Assembly (NCBI GenBank): GCA_977017575.1
Contig: CDRNVI010000235.1
Span: 1-15,734 of the forward strand
DNA: 15,734 nt
Origin: Paramoeba atlantica
Lineage: Eukaryota > Protista > Discosea
Direction: 5' to 3'
The position numbers and the translations under genes are program-made. Shown piece by piece: positions 4,090 to 15,734 of the stretch; within the stretch, counting starts at the first letter, position 1; the number at the start of each line of letters is the position of its first letter. Under the pieces are notes generated by a model. That model was given only the letters and a program-made list of their open reading frames with translations. It was not told the DNA's origin and made no database searches.

Positions 4090-4800
4090 TTTCCCACACA
4101 TTTTGTTTTCATGTTTGTTTTCCTTTGTTCTCTTCCCCTTTTCCCTCTCCCTTTTTCCTTTTAACAACACTAATCTTTTCTCTTTTCTCTTTCTCCAGAG
4201 TTTCTCTCTCTCTTTGTGTGTTTGTTGGGGTTTTAATTGATTATTTTTGAAGCAATTTATCACTATTACCAATTATCATTGTTGTGGGTCATTGGTTTGG
4301 TGTTTGTTTTCATGTTTGTTTTCTTTTATTCTCCTTCCCTTTCCCCCTCTCCCCTCTTTTTAACTGAATCTTTTCTCTTTTCTCTTTTCTCTTTCTCCAG
4401 TTCTCCAGAGTTCTCTCTTTGTGTGTTTGTTGTTGGGGTTTTAATTGGTTATTGCTATTACCAATTATTGTTGTAAAATCGTTGCTTTTGTGTTTGTTTT
4501 CTTTTTTTTTTTTTGTTTTGTTTTGTTCTCCTTCCCTTTCCCCCTCTCCCCTCCTTTTAACTAAATCTTTTCTCTTTTCTCTTTTCTCTTTTCTCTTTTC
4601 TCTTTTTTCTTTCTCCAGTTCTCCAGAGTTCTCTATCTCTTTGTGTGTTTGTTGTTGGGGTTTTAATTGGTTATTTGAAGCGATTTATCACTATTACCAA
4701 TTATTGTTGTAAAATCATTGCTTTTGTGTTTGTTTTCTTTTTTTTTTTTGTTTTCTTTTATTTTCCTCCTTTGTGTGTTTCCCTCTCCCTCTATTGAACT
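4090..4800 (+). repeat. Degenerate tandem repeat, ~210-218-nt unit, about 3.5 copies
   Basis: CTCCAGAG recurs at 4193, 4403 and 4621, each followed by TTGTGTGTTTGTTG(TTG)GGGTTTTAATTG...CTATTACCAATTAT and an intron-like C/T tract containing TTTTAAC. Confidence 0.85.
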
Positions 4801-6616: not shown

Positions 6617-8038
6617 ATGTCAATCATCCCAACCTTGATTGCAAGCAAACAAAGAAAGCCTGACTCAACATGGCTACACTTCAAAATAACCTATTCTCAA
6701 ATTGTTCAAATTTTATTGGAAAAAGGAAAACCAAATGTTGATCTTCCAAATGTGGTTCTTCTTTTTCTTTTTCTTTTTTTTTTTTTCAGTTTCTCATTTT
6801 TCTTTTGTTTTTTAATGTAAAGAATGGAACAACTCCTCTTTTTATTGCTGCTCAAAATGGAGATGAACAAATTGTTCAACTTTTATTGGAAAAAGGAAAA
6901 CCAAATGTTGATCTTGCAAATAAGGTTCTTTTGTTGTTTGTTTTCTTTTTCTTTTTCTTTTTTTTTCAGTTTCTCACTTTTTCTATATTTTTTTTAATGT
7001 AAAGGCTGGAATAACTCCTCTTTATATTGCTGCTCAAGAGGGACATGAACAAATTGTTCAACTTTTATTGGAAAAAGGAAAACCAAATGTTGATCTTCCA
7101 GATCAAGTTCTTTTGTTATTTGTTTCTTTTTCTTTTTCTTTTCAGTTTCTCATTTTTCTATTTTTTTAATATAAAGGATGGAGTAACTCCTCTTTATATT
7201 TGCTGCTTGTGAAGGATATGAACAAATTGTTCAAATTTTATTGAAAAAAGGAGCTAATGTTGATCTTGCAGATAAGGTTATTTTGTTGATTGTTTCTTTT
7301 TTTTTTCCTTTTTTTTATACTCTAAAATTTGTGTGGTATATATTTGTGTTTCTTTTTTTCTTTTTAAACTCCTTTTTATGTTTAGAATGGCTGGAGCCCT
7401 CTTCATATTGCTGCTTTCAAAGGTTTTGAAGAAGTTGTAAAAATTCTAATTGAATATGGGTCTGATATACATCATCAAGAGAAAGTTTTCATTTTCTTTT
7501 TTTTCTTTTTTTATATTTATTCTCATTTTTTTTTTTCTATGATGAGAGGAGAATGGATTTGTGTGATTGTTTTATTTTGTTTTTCTCTTTTAACATTTTT
7601 TTTTTTTTTTCAAGATTGGTTGGACTCCTCTTCACACAGCCACTTCTAAAGGTTTTAAAGAAATTGTAAAGATTTTTATTGGGCATGGTGCCAATGTTAA
7701 TATTCAAAATCAAGTTTTTTTTTTCTTTTTTATTAGGGTTTCTTTGTTTTTATTTGTTTATTTTTTTTATTTGTGGGGTGTTGTTGAAAGAGGAAACTTT
7801 TTTTTTTTTGATTTTTTTTTTCTTTTTTTGTTAGAGTGGTCACACAGTACTTGATGTTGCTAAAGATGAAAAAATTATTGAACTAATCATGCAATTAAAG
7901 GTTTGATTTTTTTTCATTTTTTTTATTTCAATTTTTTTATTATTCAAATAATGATTGTAAGAAATGGAATCTCCCTTTTTATTTTCTTGATTTTAGGGAC
8001 AAACTAGAAAACCAGCTCAAACAAAAAAAGAAAATTAA
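6617..8038 (+). pseudogene. Ankyrin-repeat gene A (probable pseudogene or chimera): exons 6617/6698-6754, 6823-6924, 7005-7106, 7177-7276, 7386-7484, 7615-7713, 7835-7900, 7997-8038
   Basis: Phase-0 exons read [34 protein letters not shown], then NGWSPLHIAAFKG..., IGWTPLHTATSKG..., cap SGHTVLDVAKDEKIIELIMQLK and terminal GQTRKPAQTKKEN*. The first ankyrin exon is only a 3' half (from 6698), fused to unrelated sequence with an in-frame ATG at 6617. Exon 7177-7276 is 100 nt: an extra T in TATATTTGCTGCT near 7201 shifts the frame (real or a homopolymer error). Confidence 0.8.
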
Positions 8039-8208
8039 AATATGTTGTTGTAGTTCATTCTTCAAAACATAAAAACAAAGAAAAAGAATTCAAAATATTT
8101 TTTGGTTTTGAGAAAAATTTGTTTTTTTAACAAAGAAAATTTGAAATAAATTAATTAGAGATGTACAATAGTTGAAATTTTTTTTTATTCTTTGAATTCA
8201 CTTCAAAG

Positions 8209-9096
8209 AGGATGGAATGATCAAAAAGATAAGTTAAATGAAGAAGTTGGACTGTTTTCCAGTCAAGACCAAAGAAGCATTGAAAAGTTGAAGAAGATAA
8301 TGGTTGTTGATGGTTGAGCTCTTGTGTTGTGATTTGAAGCCAATCAAGTTTCTCTTTCCTTTTCTTTATCCATCAAAACAAAAAAAAAAAACTTTTTCCA
8401 AAAAGAAAAAACTTCCAAAAAACAAAATAGCTTTTTTATTTATTCTCAGTTTTTTGGAACTTAAGTTGAAAGTTGGAAAAAAACTAAAAAAGGAATTATC
8501 TTTTCAATTCAAAAAAGTTTGAACTTTTTTTTATTTCTAATTTTAGAATTTTGGTTTTGATTCCACTTTCCAAAGTTGAAAAAAAAAAGAATTTTTTTTT
8601 TGATGGAAAAAAAGATCAAAAAAAAATCAAAAAAGTTGATAAAAACATAGTTTTTAAAACAACAAAAAAAGGTTTTGGGACAAGTGGTGGACAGGCACAA
8701 TGTTCAGTTGGTTTTTAATACAATTGTTGATTGTAAGGATTTTGCGAGTGGCCTTGATTACACCCAACTTTCTTATTCAGTTTCTTTGATTTTAATTTTT
8801 TTTTTTTTTAATTTCTTTTTTTTTTAAAATATCTTTTTTTAAAATTTCTTTCTTTTTTAGAATGGATGTTATGTGTCTGGGTCAATCATTTTCCAAGAAG
8901 TCAGGCAATCCAACAATTTTAGTTCTTTTGTCAATAATTTGAGTTTCATCTCTGTGTCATAGTATGTATTTTTTTGGAATCTGGCTTTTTTCATTTTTTT
9001 TTAATTTTTTTTTTAATTTTTTTTTAATTTTTTTTTTCAAAAGGTTTGTGTTTTGAAAAAACAAATTCAAAAGGGAAAAAACAATTTGCAAACTGA
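8209..9096 (+). CDS. Orphan exon chain of unknown product: 8209-8302, 8672-8779, 8861-8942, 9044-9096
   Basis: AG/GT-bounded coding-like islands splice without internal stops: GWNDQKDKLNEEVGLFSSQDQRSIEKLKKIM|VLGQVVDRHNVQLVFNTIVDCKDFASGLDYTQLSYS|NGCYVSGSIIFQEVRQSNNFSSFVNNL|SLCFEKTNSKGKKQFAN*. No independent start is evident and no domain was recognised. Confidence 0.4.
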
Positions 9097-9458
9097 GTCA
9101 GAGGAGTCACTATTGGAGTTGAGAGTGTTTCATTCAAAGCTCTTTTTGTTTCAAATTTTTCCAAAAAAGAAGACCAATCAACTAAAAAAAAAAAGAATAA
9201 AATCTTTCAACAACCATCTTTGGTTTTTTTTGTTGTTCACTCTAATTAAAAAGTTTTTTTTCTTCTCTTTTTTCTTTTCTCTCTTTCTCACTCTTTTTAT
9301 ATGTTAATTTTCTTTTCTTTTCTTTTCTTTTACCTTCTGCTTCAACCACACATGAACAACTCTCATCAGCTCTCTCATCTTCCTCATTTTATCACACAAG
9401 ACTAATGAAAACAGGATATCTATTCTCTTTTTCAAACTTTTAAACTTTTAATTAAAAT

Positions 9459-10845
9459 TTAATTTTCTTTTTTTGCTTGAGCTGGTTTTATAGTTTTTCC
9501 CTACAACCATGAAAACAAAAATGAGATCATATTCTTCTTCCACACTCAAATAATGTATTTATTCAACAAAAAAATCAAACAAAAAAAAGAAAAGAAAAAA
9601 AAGAAAAAAAAGAAAAAAAAGAGGAAAATGGACAAAAAAAAAGAAAGAAAAAACCAAACCTTCAATTGAATGATCAGATCAACAATTCTCTGGTTCTTTG
9701 CAACATCAAAGACTGTCCTCCCAGACTAAAACAAAAAAAGAAAAGAAGTTCAAAAAAAAAAAGACCCCACCCAAAACCAACAAAATCAAAATAAAATCAA
9801 AAAAAAAAGGGAACATTCTAAATCAAACACATCAAAAAAAAAATATTCTTTAAAAAAAGGTATTCTAAAAGAAAAAAAAGGAAGATTAAAAAACACAGAT
9901 TTTACACACACTTTGATCAACTAACACAATCAAAAGAGATATTCCCCAAAACCCAAATAACAAATATACACAAAACAAAATGAGAAAAAACAAAACAAAA
10001 ATGAAACAAAAAGGGGAAAAAAAAAATATCAAAAAAAAAAGAAAAATGAAAAAACTTGGTTTTGAATATTAACATTGGCATGATGTTCAATAAAAATCTT
10101 TACAATTTGTTCAAAACCTTTCGCAGCAGCAAAATGAAGAGGGGTCCACCCAAACTTAAGAATTTTTTTTTTTTTTTAAAAAAAGAATTTTTAAAAAATA
10201 AAACACAAAACAAAAAACACTCATATCCACCCTCCCTCGAGGGACTGGAAAAACAAAATCAACAAATTCAAAAGAACAATGAATAACACAAGAACCATAT
10301 TTGAAAGAAAAAGGAGTTCAAAAAAACAAAGAAAGAACCCTACCACAAATATTTATTCCATAAACAAATATCAAAAAAAAAAAAAGAAAAATGAAAAAAC
10401 TTTGTTTTGAATATTAACATTGGCACAATGTTCAATAAAAATTTTTACAATTTGTTCAAAACCTTTCTCAGCAGCAATATGAAGAGAGGTCCATTCAAAC
10501 TTAACAAAAAAGATTCAAAAAAAAAAAGAAAAAGAAAAAGAAACAATCAACAAAATTACCTCATCTGCAAGATCACCATTTGCTTTCCAATAAAATTTGA
10601 ACAATTTGTTCATGTCCATTTTGAGCAGCAATATAAAGAGGAGTGAATCCATCTTTGACATTAAAAAAAAATAGAAAAATGAGAAAGTGAAAAAAAGAAG
10701 AAAAAGAGAAAAAGAAAAAGAATCAATCAACAAAATTACCTTATCTGCAAGATCACCATTTGCTTTTCCTTTTTCCAATAAAATTTGAACAATTTGCTCA
10801 TGTCCATTTTCAACAGCAATATAAAGAGGAGTTGCTCCATCCTTT

Positions 10846-10876
<31 letters not shown>

Positions 10877-11400
10877 TGAGAAAGTGAAAAAAAAGAAAAA
10901 GAAAAAGAAAACAATCAACAAAAGAACCTGATTTGCAAGATCAACATTTGAGTTTCCTTTTTCCAATAAAATTTGAACAATTTGTTCATGTCCATTTTGA
11001 GCAGCAATATAAAGAGGAGTTCTTCCATCCTTTTTACATTAAAAAAAATAGAAAAATGAGAAACTGAAAAAGAAAAAGAAAGAGAAACAATCAACAAAAT
11101 AACACCTTAGTTGCAAGATCAACATTTGCTTTTCCTTTTTCCAATAAAATTTCAACAATTTGTTTGTGTCCATTTTGAGCAGCACCAAAAAGAGGAGTTC
11201 TTCCATCCTTTACATTTAAAAAAATAGAAAAATGAGAAACTGAAAAAGAAAAAGAAAAAGAAAAAGAAAAAGAAAAGAAACAATATCAACAAAAGAACCT
11301 GATCTGGAAGATCAACATTTGGTTTTCCTTTTTCCAATAAAGATTGAACAATTTGTTCATCTCCTTCTTGAGCAGCAATATAAAGAGGAGTCATTTCACC
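9459..11400 (-). CDS. Ankyrin-repeat gene B (5' end not found): exons 11400-11299, 11207-11106, 11029-10928, 10841-10740, 10652-10560, 10499-10401, 10154-10056, 9725-9660, 9500-9459
   Basis: Reverse-strand phase-0 exons with the same repeat consensus as gene A (e.g. [67 protein letters not shown]). Cap SGRTVFDVAKNQRIVDLIIQLK and terminal exon GKTIKPAQAKKEN* are homologous to those of A, with the same TAA position. Exon 10652-10560 is 93 nt with compensating -1/-8 indels. Confidence 0.82.
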
Positions 11401-11780
11401 CTTTTTATAAAAAAGTTGTAATAACAAAAAGAAATTTTGAATATTTTCAGTGATTTTTTTGTTTGTTTGTTTGTTTTTGAGAGAGAGTTCAAATTATGTG
11501 TGGTGAAATGAAATTATGTGTCCTTGGATGTTATTCTGTCCCCAAAAACAAAAAGAAAGCTCACTCTTGACAATGAGAGAAAATGGAACACCTTTCTTAA
11601 TTTTTCCGGAGGAGGATCGGTTGTTGGAAGGTTTTCAAAAAAAATAAAACAAAAATAAAACAAAAAAAGAAACTTCAACAGAATTGAACCTGTGGTGTGG
11701 AGGGGAAGTTTTGCTTTTTTTTTTTGTTTTATTTTTGTTTTATTTTTGTTTTTTTTTTTTTTTTGTTTTATTTTTTCTTG

Positions 11781-14528
11781 ATGAATTTGAATGAGAGAAA
11801 CATGATGGAGGAGGAGGTGGGAGAAAGAGAGAGTCCTGAGAAGAGAAGAGAGGATGAGAGAAAGAGGAAGAGAAAAGATGAAGAAGAAGAGAAAGGGAGA
11901 GAAAAACAAAGAGATGGAGTGATTAAAAGAACAAAAGTGGAAAATGAAGAACTTGAAGCAGTGAGATTGAGAAATGAAGAAGAAGAGAGGAAGAGAAAAG
12001 AAGAAGAAGAAGAAGAAGAAGAGAAAGAGAGAAAAGAAGAAGAAGAAGAGAAATTGAAAAAAGAGTTTGATGGTCTTTTTTTTGCTGCTCAAAATGGAGA
12101 TAAACAAACCGTTCAACTTTTCTTGGAAAAAGGAAAACCAAATATTGATCTTGCAGATCAGGTTATTTTGTTGATTCTTTTTCTTTTTCTTTTTCTTTTT
12201 CTTTTTTTGTTATTCTTCTTATTTTTAATTTGTTGAGAATGAAAAAATGGATTGAGTGAGCTCATATTTCTAAAACAAACAAAAGCTGCTATTTATTGAT
12301 TTTTTCATTTCTTTTCCCCCCCCTTTTTTTTTATGTTCCCAAAAGGAATATGGAGCAACTGCACTTGATGCTGCTGCTTTTGAGGGACATCATCAAATTG
12401 TTCAACTTTTATTAAAAAAAGGAAAATCAAATGTTAATTCTCAAAGAAAGGTTTTTTTTTATTCTTTCTTCTTTTTTTTCAGAAAGAAAATATTTTTGAA
12501 ATGAAAGAGAAAGTTTTTTGTTCATTGTGATTGAATTTGTTTTTTACAATTTTTATAAAAAATATATTTTTTTCATTTTTTTTTTGAATGTTTTTCTATT
12601 AATTTTAAATCAATCAGGATGGAACAACTCCTCTTCATGTTGCTGTTGAAAATGGACATGAACAAACTGTTCAAATTTTATTGGAAAAAGGAAAAGCAAA
12701 TGTTGATCTTGCAGATAAGGTTATTTTTTTGTTAATTGTTTTTCTTTTTTTTTTTTCTTTTTTTTTACTTTCTCATTTTTCTATTTTTTTTTAATGTAAA
12801 GGATGGAGCAACTCCTCTTTTTATTGCTGCTGAACATGGATATGAACAAATTGTTCAAATTTTATTGGAAGAAGGAAACCCAAATGTTGAGTTTGAAACA
12901 AAGGTTATTGTTATTGTATTTTTATTTTTAATTTGTTGAGAATGAAAAAATGGATTGAGTGAGCTCATATTTCTAAAACAAACAAAAGCTGCTATTTATT
13001 TATTTTTCATTTCTTTTCCCCCCTTTTTTTTTATGTTCCCAAAAGGAATATGGAGCAACTGCACTTGATGTTGCTGCTTTTGAAGGACATTATCAAATTG
13101 TTCAACTTTTATTAGAAAAAGGAAAATCAAATGTTAATTCTCAAAGAAAGGTTTTTCTTTATTCTTTCTTCTTTCTTCTTTTTTTCAGAAAGAAAATATT
13201 TTTGAAATGATAAAGAGAAAGTTTTTTGTTCATTGTGATTGAATTTGTTTTTCACAATTTTTATAAAAAATATATTTTTTTCTTTTTTTTTATTCTCTCT
13301 ATTTTTTTAAATTAAAAGAAAAGGATGGAACAACTCCTCTTTTTGTTGCTGTTGAAAATGGACATGAACAAACTGTTCAAATTTTATTGGAAAAAGGAAA
13401 AGCAAATGTTAATCTTACAACTAAGGTGTTATTTTGTTAATTGTTTTTCTTTTTCTTTTTCTTTTCTTTTTCACTTTTTCACTTTTCTATTTTTTTGAAT
13501 GTAAAGAATAGGGTAACCCCTCTTTATATTGCTGCTCAAAATGGACATGAACAAATTGTTCAAATTTTATTGGAAAAAGGAGAACCAAATGTTGATCTTG
13601 CAACTGAGGTTATTTTGTTGATTGTTTCTTTTTTTTTCACTCATTTTTCTATTTTTTTTAATGGAAAGGATGGAGTAACTTCTCTTTTTATTGCTGCTCA
13701 AAATGGACATAAACAAATTGGTCAACTTTTATTGGAAAAAGGAAACCCAAATATTGATCTTGGAAATAAGGTTCTTTTGTTGATTGTTTTTTTTTCTTTT
13801 TCTTTCTTTTTCTTTTTCTTTTTCTCTTTCTCATTTTTTCTCATTTTTTTTTCTATTCATGTTAAAGAATGGAGCAACTCCTCTTTATATTGCTGCTTAA
13901 AAAGGACATGAACAAATTGTTCAACTTTTATTGGAAAAAGGAGCCAATGTTGATCTTGCAAATGAGGTGTTATTTTGTTGATTGTTTCTTTTTCTTTTTC
14001 TTTTTCACTTTCTCATTTTTCTATTTTTTTTAATGTAAAGGATAGAACAACTCCTCTTTGTGTTGCTGCTCAAAATGGACATGAACAAATTGTTCAAATT
14101 TTATTGGAAAAAGGAAAACCAAATGTTGATCTTGCAGATAAGGTTATTTTTTGTTAATTATTTTTCTTTTTTTTTTTCTTTTTTTTTCACTTTCTCATTT
14201 TTCTATTTTTTTTTAATGTAAAGGATGGAGCAACTCCTCTTTTTATTGCTGCTGAACATGGATATGAACAAATTGTTCAAATTTTATTGGAAAAAAAAAA
14301 ACTAAATGTCAATCTTACAATGATGGTTTTTTTTCTTCTTATGAATATTTTGAAGAGTTGATTGATTTTGATTTCTTGTTTTGGTTCCTTCTTGAACCCT
14401 AAACCCTTATTTGTTTTAATCAAAAGGATGGAGCAACTCCTCTTTTTATTGCTGCTCAAAATGGACATGAACAAATCGTTCAAATTTTATTGGAAAAAGG
14501 AGGAGCTAATGTTGATCTTCCAAATGGG
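11781..14528 (+). CDS. Ankyrin-repeat gene C, 3'-truncated by the telomere: exons 11781-12161, 12346-12450, 12618-12719, 12802-12903, 13046-13150, 13324-13425, 13507-13608, 13669-13770, 13868-13966, 14041-14142, 14224-14325, 14427-14528
   Basis: The first exon encodes an E/K/R-rich region ending in a degenerate ankyrin repeat ([33 protein letters not shown]). Eleven 99/102/105-nt phase-0 one-repeat exons follow. There is an in-frame TAA at 13898-13900 where paralogous exons mostly have CAA. The terminal exons seen in A and B are absent. The ATG at 11781 is a candidate start only, because upstream exon-like segments exist. Unspliced readthrough into the telomere ends at TAG 14538-14540. Confidence 0.85.
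12220..13410 (+). repeat. ~700-nt higher-order duplication of a two-exon ankyrin block
   Basis: Intron TAATTTGTTGAGAATGAAAAAATGGATTGAGTGAGCTCATATTTCTAAAACAAACAAAAGCTGCTATTTATT, exon [35 protein letters not shown], the next intron and exon [19 protein letters not shown]... occur twice (exon starts 12346/13046 and 12618/13324). Confidence 0.93.
14395..14407 (-). repeat. Short interstitial telomeric motif in inverted orientation (AACCCTAAACCCT)
   Basis: Exact reverse complement of AGGGTTTAGGGTT, inside the last complete intron (14326-14426) of gene C. Confidence 0.75.
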
Positions 14529-14529
14529 G

Positions 14530-15734
14530 TTAGGGTTTAGGGTTTAGGGTTTAGGGTTTAGGGTTTAGGGTTTAGGGTTTAGGGTTTAGGGTTTAGGGTT
14601 TAGGGTTTAGGGTTTAGGGTTTAGGGTTTAGGGTTTAGGGTTTAGGGTTTAGGGTTTAGGGTTTAGGGTTTAGGGTTTAGGGTTTAGGGTTTAGGGTTTA
14701 GGGTTTAGGGTTTAGGGTTTAGGGTTTAGGGTTTAGGGTTTAGGGTTTAGGGTTTAGGGTTTAGGGTTTAGGGTTTAGGGTTTAGGGTTTAGGGTTTAGG
14801 GTTTAGGGTTTAGGGTTTAGGGTTTAGGGTTTAGGGTTTAGGGTTTAGGGTTTAGGGTTTAGGGTTTAGGGTTTAGGGTTTAGGGTTTAGGGTTTAGGGT
14901 TTAGGGTTTAGGGTTTAGGGTTTAGGGTTTAGGGTTTAGGGTTTAGGGTTTAGGGTTTAGGGTTTAGGGTTTAGGGTTTAGGGTTTAGGGTTTAGGGTTT
15001 AGGGTTTAGGGTTTAGGGTTTAGGGTTTAGGGTTTAGGGTTTAGGGTTTAGGGTTTAGGGTTTAGGGTTTAGGGTTTAGGGTTTAGGGTTTAGGGTTTAG
15101 GGTTTAGGGTTTAGGGTTTAGGGTTTAGGGTTTAGGGTTTAGGGTTTAGGGTTTAGGGTTTAGGGTTTAGGGTTTAGGGTTTAGGGTTTAGGGTTTAGGG
15201 TTTAGGGTTTAGGGTTTAGGGTTTAGGGTTTAGGGTTTAGGGTTTAGGGTTTAGGGTTTAGGGTTTAGGGTTTAGGGTTTAGGGTTTAGGGTTTAGGGTT
15301 TAGGGTTTAGGGTTTAGGGTTTAGGGTTTAGGGTTTAGGGTTTAGGGTTTAGGGTTTAGGGTTTAGGGTTTAGGGTTTAGGGTTTAGGGTTTAGGGTTTA
15401 GGGTTTAGGGTTTAGGGTTTAGGGTTTAGGGTTTAGGGTTTAGGGTTTAGGGTTTAGGGTTTAGGGTTTAGGGTTTAGGGTTTAGGGTTTAGGGTTTAGG
15501 GTTTAGGGTTTAGGGTTTAGGGTTTAGGGTTTAGGGTTTAGGGTTTAGGGTTTAGGGTTTAGGGTTTAGGGTTTAGGGTTTAGGGTTTAGGGTTTAGGGT
15601 TTAGGGTTTAGGGTTTAGGGTTTAGGGTTTAGGGTTTTAGGGTTTAGGGTTTAGGGTTTAGGGTTTAGGGTTTAGGGTTTAGGGTTTAGGGTTTAGGGTT
15701 TAGGGTTTAGGGTTTAGGGTTTAGGGGTTTAGGG
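14530..15734 (+). repeat. Telomere, (TTTAGGG)n, G-rich strand running toward the end
   Basis: One TTAGGG (14530-14535) followed by 171 heptamer units to the end of the window. Only two variants: TTTTAGGG at 15635-15642 and TTTAGGGG at 15720-15727. The orientation is that expected for a right-hand chromosome end. Confidence 0.99.

Follow-up and report, generated by a model that had tools for sequence, protein, structure and literature searches.

The window analysed here, the entire 15.7-kb contig C235 (15,734 nt) of the 45.7-Mb eukaryotic assembly of Paramoeba atlantica, ends in a telomere and carries 23 exons that each encode a single ankyrin repeat and that belong to three incomplete genes, designated A, B, and C. 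In the explanation that we consider probable, these are partly decayed members of a large subtelomeric family of ankyrin genes built from exon–intron cassettes, in which concerted evolution is combined with selection for diversity at the repeat surface. The stretch is the decaying edge of a real hypervariable ankyrin family: the observation on which the initial annotation of this DNA was based is confirmed, and the interpretation attached to it, a library of single-repeat cassettes forming a diversifying receptor or effector family, is partly supported.

A family of single-repeat ankyrin exons at chromosome ends

Cassette exons were re-derived over positions 6617–14528 by blastn with one cassette as the query, by translation, and by inspection of splice sites. 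The 23 single-repeat exons comprise 14 of 102 nt, 5 of 99 nt, 2 of 105 nt, and 2 lesioned copies, one of 100 nt with a frameshift and one of 94 nt with a deletion and an acceptor reading AA instead of AG (Table 1). Intact exons are in phase 0 with AG..GT borders, and the length is divisible by 3 in 21 of the 23. Two extra pieces were recognized, a half-cassette (6698–6754) and an N-terminal exon ending in a half-repeat. The exon census of the initial annotation is thus borne out, and the residue states that it listed (seven before TPL; F, Y, H, or C after PL; variable pairs after AA/AV; variable last three codons) were all reproduced. Of its account of the deleted exon, the lesion stands but the length of 93 nt does not, the re-derived borders (10560–10653) giving 94 nt. 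Seven single exons score 34–41 bits with Pfam Ank (PF00023; cut-off 21.1) at E values of 1e-8 to 1e-10, and since these matches extend from model position 1 to position 33 of 33, exon borders are repeat borders, as the proposal of one repeat per phase-0 exon had implied. The cassettes share their register with consensus ankyrin designs and the AnkR/AnkB structures, and hundreds of PDB entries for ankyrins and designed ankyrin repeat proteins (DARPins) match them; the closest solved structures are 4rlv, 7tw3, and 1n11, membrane-binding domains of vertebrate ankyrin-R/B/G. What had been pictured as a coherent library is, in the window, a set of three gene fragments, each truncated or lesioned, distributed over both strands.

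A two-cassette query returned 249 DNA matches genome-wide. The family was sampled in ~170 kb from ten other contigs together with the window, the arrays on C171 and C206 lying outside this sample, and at least 200 cassette exons were collected on these 11 contigs, among them 157 of 102 nt, 22 of 99 nt, and 15 of 105 nt. None of the 157 exons of 102 nt (143 of them outside the window) contains a stop codon, and the number of distinct peptides is 154. The introns between cassettes are bounded by GT..AG in 173 of 173 cases and have a median length of 79 nt; arrays hold 8–25 cassettes. Intact genes on C198 and C218 open with a charged first exon; a 99-nt repeat that serves as a cap comes next, then a 105-nt repeat and the 102-nt cassettes, and the 3′ part is made up of two conserved 99-nt repeats, a C-terminal cap, and a short basic tail. 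By eye, these first exons carry the same charged segment as that of gene C. No signal peptide was evident by eye, and in the window, C198, and C218, no NACHT or NB-ARC domain was found in the interval from the N-terminal exon to the first cassette. Nor was a ROC-COR/NB-ARC module detected in the first exons and cassette regions examined, by Pfam for the first exon of gene C and by eye for C198. The label of a receptor or effector family therefore exceeds the data, which comprise only a charged E/K/R-rich N-terminus and ankyrin repeats, Pfam having detected no signalling domain in the one N-terminal exon on which it was run. When the arrays were searched by blastn on both strands, no cassette was found in antisense orientation inside an intron; the copies on the opposite strand are parts of another gene fragment, convergent or divergent. 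Literature on ankyrins in Paramoeba and Neoparamoeba, and on subtelomeric ankyrins with diversifying selection, yielded no description of the family.

The subtelomeric setting, another element of the initial annotation, is borne out by the (GGGTTTA)n telomere that ends the window. CCCTAAA repeats start C218, C198, C225, and C191, and TTTAGGG repeats end C176. Telomere repeats are present at 6 of the 11 contigs (these five and the window), with arrays 0–22 kb from the telomere (4–22 kb in those five), and the main array is transcribed toward the telomere on all six. These six contigs thereby show the trait of subtelomeric contingency families, whose members lie within tens of kilobases of telomeres. 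The arrays on C201, C146, C142, C151, and C189 are located within 32 kb of a contig end (telomere status having been assessed for the other six contigs).

Surface diversity and the history of the cassettes

DARPin modules were reportedly randomised by Binz et al. in 2003 at positions 2, 3, 5, 13, 14, and 33. These six positions, which by ankyrin register correspond to exon positions 34, 1, 3, 11, 12, and 32, were fixed beforehand as the test set. Divergence was measured among 126 cassettes with both flanking introns, the introns being aligned pairwise and scored for mismatches. The proportion of non-synonymous differences (pN) at the six positions is 0.38, compared with a proportion of synonymous differences (pS) of 0.095 over all codons and a divergence of 0.098 in aligned introns. 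The resulting ratio of surface to neutral change is 4.0 (3.7–4.4 over 300 random matchings into independent pairs), the ratio of pS to intron divergence is 0.97, and surface pN exceeds pS in 60 of 62 independent pairs (p = 8e-16). Framework pN is ~0.7 times neutral. Thirteen sites lie above neutral after Bonferroni correction (1, 3, 7, 8, 11, 12, 14, 20, 26, 27, 32, 33, and 34), by a factor of 3–6, and include all six DARPin positions; eight lie below it (5, 6, 9, 13, 16, 21, 22, and 24) and constitute the TPL, Ala, Gly, and Leu-Leu core. Taken alone, the 14 intact exons of the window display the same pattern (surface 0.32, pS 0.06). In ankyrin repeats, the concave binding face is made up of the beta-hairpin/loop and the inner helix (PMC4986451, PMC8229355), and sites 1, 3, 7, 8, 11, 12, 14, 32, 33, and 34 fall on these elements when mapped by sequence register to the consensus repeat. 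Variability thus resides where the initial annotation had placed it, on the known ankyrin binding face, and an excess of non-synonymous change at surface sites, whose absence it had named as refuting, was found, at about four times the neutral rate. Selection would be the cause of this pattern.

Two other baselines were discarded. Ungapped comparison of introns gave a pi of ~0.37, inflated by indels in T runs, and was replaced by pairwise alignment; nearest-neighbour pairs chosen and measured by the same intron biased the baseline low, and the other intron or random matchings were used instead. The further claim of near-invariance of helix 2, synonymous sites included, proved weak. Synonymous diversity (piS) is 0.054 at codons 16–21 versus 0.080 at the other framework codons, a ratio of 0.67 whose bootstrap interval (0.40–1.00) reaches 1, and the apparent invariance of helix 2 stems mainly from a divergence of only ~10% at all neutral sites of the cassettes, introns included.

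The unit of evolution is the exon-plus-intron cassette of ~180 bp, and the growth by duplication proposed earlier holds in the form of whole cassettes of this kind. Variable sites are near linkage equilibrium, with a mean r2 of ~0.01 beyond 5 nt and all four gametes in 83% of informative site pairs. Where downstream introns are near-identical (1.2%), upstream introns are 7% diverged, versus 9.8% in random pairs, and neighbouring cassettes are 7.6% diverged versus 9.8% for cassettes on different contigs. Unique 3′ modules differ by 5–28% between genes, and cassettes everywhere by ~10%. Within gene A, 6698–7316 matches C201:74697–75317 at 93.6% identity, and 7315–8156 matches C142:69995–69154, a 3′ gene end, at 95%. 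Since C201-like and C142-like parts join near 7315, gene A is a 5′-truncated chimera, and its junction is direct evidence of ectopic exchange between chromosome ends. In the comparison of C198:6100–10050 with C218:10040–14170 (loci L033/L034 and L031/L032), the flanks are 97–99% identical, the cassettes number 12 versus 13, and the centre is far more diverged; the two telomere-proximal ankyrin genes may be paralogous ends or two haplotypes. Linkage disequilibrium, introns, 3′ modules, the chimeric gene A, and the cassette numbers on C198 and C218 point to a history that was reticulate and concerted, with diversity at the surface favoured by selection; the simplest reading of it would be gain and loss of cassettes by unequal crossing-over and short-tract conversion within and between subtelomeres.

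According to the favoured explanation, an intact member combines a charged E/K/R-rich N-terminus and a capping repeat with 8–25 internal repeats, two 99-nt repeats, a C-terminal cap, and a basic tail, each internal repeat being encoded by its own phase-0 exon, of 102 nt or in variants 99 or 105 nt, which is followed by an intron of ~79 nt. Cassettes would multiply, drop out, and swap via unequal crossing-over and short-tract gene conversion, both in arrays and between chromosome ends. This exchange would hold introns, synonymous sites, and framework residues near 10% divergence, and selection for diversity would keep or drive differences at the beta-turn, first-helix, and loop positions lining the concave groove. 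The outcome would be a repertoire of putative soluble binder proteins with many different surfaces. At the chromosome end captured in the window, ectopic recombination would have left the 5′-truncated chimera A and the inverted fragment B, devoid of its first exon and bearing one dead cassette; gene C, with its premature stop, would have been severed at the twelfth exon, the addition of new telomere repeats healing the break.

Several observations weigh against this explanation. In the eight clearest recent orthologous exon pairs, non-synonymous change at the surface (pN) reaches 5.1%, against 3.3% for pS and 2.3% in non-coding sequence, an excess of only 1.5–2.2 times that has the right direction and, with small counts, is not significant, so that ongoing fast change is not separable from old, preserved surface diversity. 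Intron divergence may be underestimated in T-rich alignments, and near-zero linkage disequilibrium may partly reflect recurrent mutation among few allowed residues. Some similar contigs could be haplotypes rather than separate chromosome ends, and the frameshift in exon A4, situated in a short run of T, might stem from misassembly. Either reading of the surface differences, ongoing change or protected old diversity, is a form of selection for diversity; neither pure neutrality nor decay fits.

The view that decaying repeats vary through relaxed constraint or mutational hot spots, and not through selection on a binding surface, deserves almost no credence. The window copies are indeed truncated and lesioned, by a frameshift, a stop, and the loss of an acceptor, and pS at hypervariable codons is ~1.8 times that of framework codons. 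Disabling lesions are commoner in the window, affecting 3 of 17 close cassettes versus 1 of 178 elsewhere (Fisher p = 0.002), the single lesioned cassette exon outside the window being located on C225; framework deviations, taken as a sign of decay, do not differ significantly (0.50 in the window versus 0.39 elsewhere per cassette, p = 0.49). However, the absence of stops from all 157 exons of 102 nt, a framework below neutral alongside 13 specific sites above it, the coincidence of variable sites with six DARPin positions fixed beforehand, and the agreement of introns and synonymous sites at ~0.097 all speak against relaxed constraint. The broken arrays at chromosome ends have also been considered as a silent donor archive from which gene conversion would feed expressed ankyrin genes, like the pseudogene archives of antigenic variation. 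Sub-cassette mosaicism, near-absent linkage disequilibrium, the chimeric gene A, subtelomeric clustering, and the greater uniformity of cassettes relative to unique gene parts would be in line with such an archive. It nevertheless seems very unlikely, since nothing shows a direction of transfer, somatic change, or monoallelic expression, and since most members are intact, so that a pseudogene archive is not needed for diversity, and lesions are enriched only in the window.

Another proposal, unlikely but the least so of these alternatives, is that the cassettes might constitute a working combinatorial library at the RNA level, with regulated skipping or alternative splicing generating many binder isoforms per gene. 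Cassette exons are all of phase 0-0 with uniform AG..GT sites, gene B stays in frame if its dead cassette is simply not spliced in, and one study has described alternative splicing for exons of this kind in brown-algal ROCO genes (PMC11378527). Symmetric exons, however, follow automatically from one repeat per exon and hence constitute no evidence of skipping, and the lesioned exons of A and C retain good splice sites, with nothing to suggest their avoidance. Rather more doubtful than this proposal is a scenario in which the protist keeps a chromosome-end repertoire of natural "DARPins" and continually gains new surfaces by conversion from silent or broken subtelomeric arrays, that of the window being an example, or by combinatorial exon skipping; if true, the repertoire would represent an adaptive-like recognition system built on ankyrin repeats.

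Relation to other repeat families

The ROCO-LRR and NB-ARC-TPR genes of Ectocarpus form candidate receptor families whose exons are shuffled (Zambounis et al. 2012, PMC3341825), and alternative splicing was subsequently described for them (PMC11378527). The comparison with Ectocarpus put forward in the initial annotation fits in logic, in view of the phase-0 single-repeat exons, inactivated exons, and pseudogenes of these families (PMC3341825), which provide the closest match in this respect. Common features are one repeat per fixed-length phase-0 exon, tandem repetition of exon plus intron, inactivated exons and pseudogenes beside intact genes, scrambled exon order between paralogues, and variability of exposed residues. 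In contrast to the brown-algal families, the repeat is an ankyrin repeat rather than an LRR or TPR, no ROC-COR/NB-ARC module was detected by Pfam in the N-terminal exon scanned, no cassettes were seen on the non-coding strand of introns, and the arrays are strongly subtelomeric and point to the telomere. Fungal NLRs, whose repeats of the ANK, TPR, and WD types are highly conserved internally (Dyrka et al. 2014, PMC4986451), are the closest match in repeat type. They share ANK repeats of 33–34 amino acids, high internal conservation, variation in repeat number, concerted evolution by repeat reshuffling, and selected or polymorphic sites on the concave face (inner helix, beta-hairpin/loop). Whereas fungal NLRs join their repeats to NACHT/NB-ARC and an effector domain and are intronless, only a charged low-complexity N-terminus is found here and each repeat is a separate exon. 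With respect to the 85% identity criterion of fungal NLRs, the cassettes reach 84% at the nucleotide level and, at the amino-acid level, 67% over the whole cassette, 86.5% at the 21 framework sites, and 36% at variable sites. The combination of ANK repeats with exon cassettes, a subtelomeric location, and no NOD/ROCO module found sets the family apart from both Ectocarpus genes and fungal NLRs. It represents a third form of the cassette-built hypervariable repeat strategy, after brown-algal LRR/TPR and intronless fungal NLR ANK/WD/TPR genes.

Synthetic DARPin libraries (PMC8229355) resemble the family in their fixed framework between N- and C-terminal caps and in near-independent residue combinations, and all six library positions map onto natural hypervariable sites. 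Unlike these libraries, the family is natural, has seven more variable sites (7, 8, 14, 20, 26, 27, and 33), employs a 34-residue module with one extra loop residue, and extends to ~25 repeats. The design principle of DARPins, a fixed ankyrin framework with variable beta-turn and first-helix positions in modules that can be added or removed, is thereby shown independently in nature, in the form of exon-plus-intron cassettes at a protist's chromosome ends, and ~150 natural, distinct repeat surfaces are offered for the study of ankyrin binding. Prey, symbionts, parasites, and self-recognition are candidate ligands or roles. Many repeats of ANK1-3 in vertebrates are encoded by single 99-nt exons. 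The long arrays of canonical ANK repeats in vertebrate ankyrin-R/B/G are comparable to those described here, but the vertebrate proteins are products of single conserved genes with anciently diverged repeats rather than of a recently homogenised hypervariable multigene family.

Gene fragments A, B, and C and their surroundings

Fragment A extends over 6617–8038 (+). Family homology begins only at 6698, in the middle of a cassette, which marks the 5′ truncation point; no family match was found upstream of 6698, and Pfam returned nothing for the whole A1 exon or for the 22-amino-acid A7. Fragment B (11400–9459, −) has five cassettes, four good and one dead, together with the two conserved 99-nt repeats, a C-terminal cap, and a tail exon. 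The charged E/K-rich N-terminal exon of intact members was not found within 400 nt upstream of B1, and B5 probably now lies inside an intron. Fragment C (11781–14528, +) is arranged head-to-head with B, the two being divergent. Its first exon is 6–10% diverged from the first exons on C198, C218, C142, C191, and C201, and Pfam yielded only sub-threshold low-complexity matches for it and no signalling domain. Exon C5 arose by an internal multi-cassette duplication. Because the telomere starts in the last codon of the twelfth exon, gene C is devoid of any 3′ exons. The window thus shows turnover: members at chromosome ends are lost to ectopic recombination, to point lesions, and to a break that, at a cassette boundary, was healed by a new telomere.

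Table 1. Exons of gene fragments A, B, and C and the telomere in the 15,734-nt window
Feature	Positions	Strand	Description	Evidence or remark
A1	6617..6754	+	First exon	Open reading frame from ATG into second half of cassette
A2	6823..6924	+	102-nt cassette	AG..GT; Pfam Ank E 5e-9; 1 nt different from C201:74824
A3	7005..7106	+	102-nt cassette	blastn, borders
A4	7177..7276	+	100-nt cassette, frameshift	Splice sites intact; not a multiple of 3; in-frame stops follow
A5	7386..7484	+	99-nt conserved penultimate-type ANK repeat (GW.PLH type)	Pfam Ank, borders
A6	7615..7713	+	99-nt ANK repeat	Pfam Ank, borders
A7	7835..7900	+	66-nt C-terminal capping half-repeat	Kept in gene B and other family members
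A8	7997..8038	+	Short basic tail exon with stop codon	Borders
B1	11299..11400	-	First recognisable exon, 102-nt cassette	Borders
B2	11106..11207	-	102-nt cassette	Borders
B3	10928..11029	-	102-nt cassette	Pfam Ank E 2e-10
B4	10740..10841	-	102-nt cassette	Borders
B5	10560..10653	-	Dead cassette	Acceptor dinucleotide lost (AA); internal deletion breaks frame
B6	10401..10499	-	99-nt conserved ANK repeat	Borders
B7	10056..10154	-	99-nt conserved ANK repeat	Pfam Ank, borders
B8	9660..9725	-	C-terminal capping half-repeat	Borders
B9	9459..9500	-	Tail exon with stop codon	Borders
C1	11781..12161	+	E/K/R-rich N-terminus of ~95 amino acids, into half ankyrin repeat	Family first exon
C2	12346..12450	+	105-nt landmark cassette subtype (ends ..NSQRK)	Pfam Ank, borders
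C3	12618..12719	+	102-nt cassette	Borders
C4	12802..12903	+	102-nt cassette	Borders
C5	13046..13150	+	Second copy of 105-nt subtype	Flanks identical to those of C2
C6	13324..13425	+	102-nt cassette	Borders
C7	13507..13608	+	102-nt cassette	Borders
C8	13669..13770	+	102-nt cassette, two framework deviations	Borders
C9	13868..13966	+	99-nt cassette, in-frame stop at codon 11	Translation
C10	14041..14142	+	102-nt cassette	Borders
C11	14224..14325	+	102-nt cassette, degenerate loop, then atypical intron	Borders
C12	14427..14528	+	Last cassette, cut by telomere	Final codon 14526-14528 is the first, imperfect telomere unit
Telomere	14526..15734	+	(GGGTTTA)n, 172 copies	Ends the window

At 14526–14535, where the telomere begins, its first unit is imperfect (GGGGTTA), and the apparent GT donor of C12 is telomeric. 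An inverted telomere-like 10-mer, CCCTAAACCC, which may be the scar of an earlier end rearrangement, lies some 120 nt upstream at 14397–14406, within the atypical last intron. The 105-nt subtype, with its ..NSQRK ending and the longer intron that follows, also occurs at C142:71078, C146:19226, C151:28815, and C176:51921 and recurs once or twice per array in several genes, like a positional landmark.

Other repeats occupy the part of the window preceding fragment A. At 142–1335, a 362-bp tandem unit is present in 3.3 copies with 89% matches, in which short exons with an RNI-type leucine-rich repeat motif are separated by CT-rich introns; Pfam LRR_6 matches to these exons are weak (E 0.003–0.006, below cut-off), and the locus constitutes a second cassette-built repeat family at the same chromosome end. 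A Sel1-repeat coding region follows at 1662–2813 (Pfam Sel1, E 3.9e-12); between 1662 and 1957 it is tandemly repeated with a period of 111 bp, and its GC content is 0.42–0.43, versus 0.25–0.30 in the ankyrin region. A 197-bp tandem repeat of pyrimidine-rich sequence is located at 4102–4591 (2.5 copies, 78% matches).

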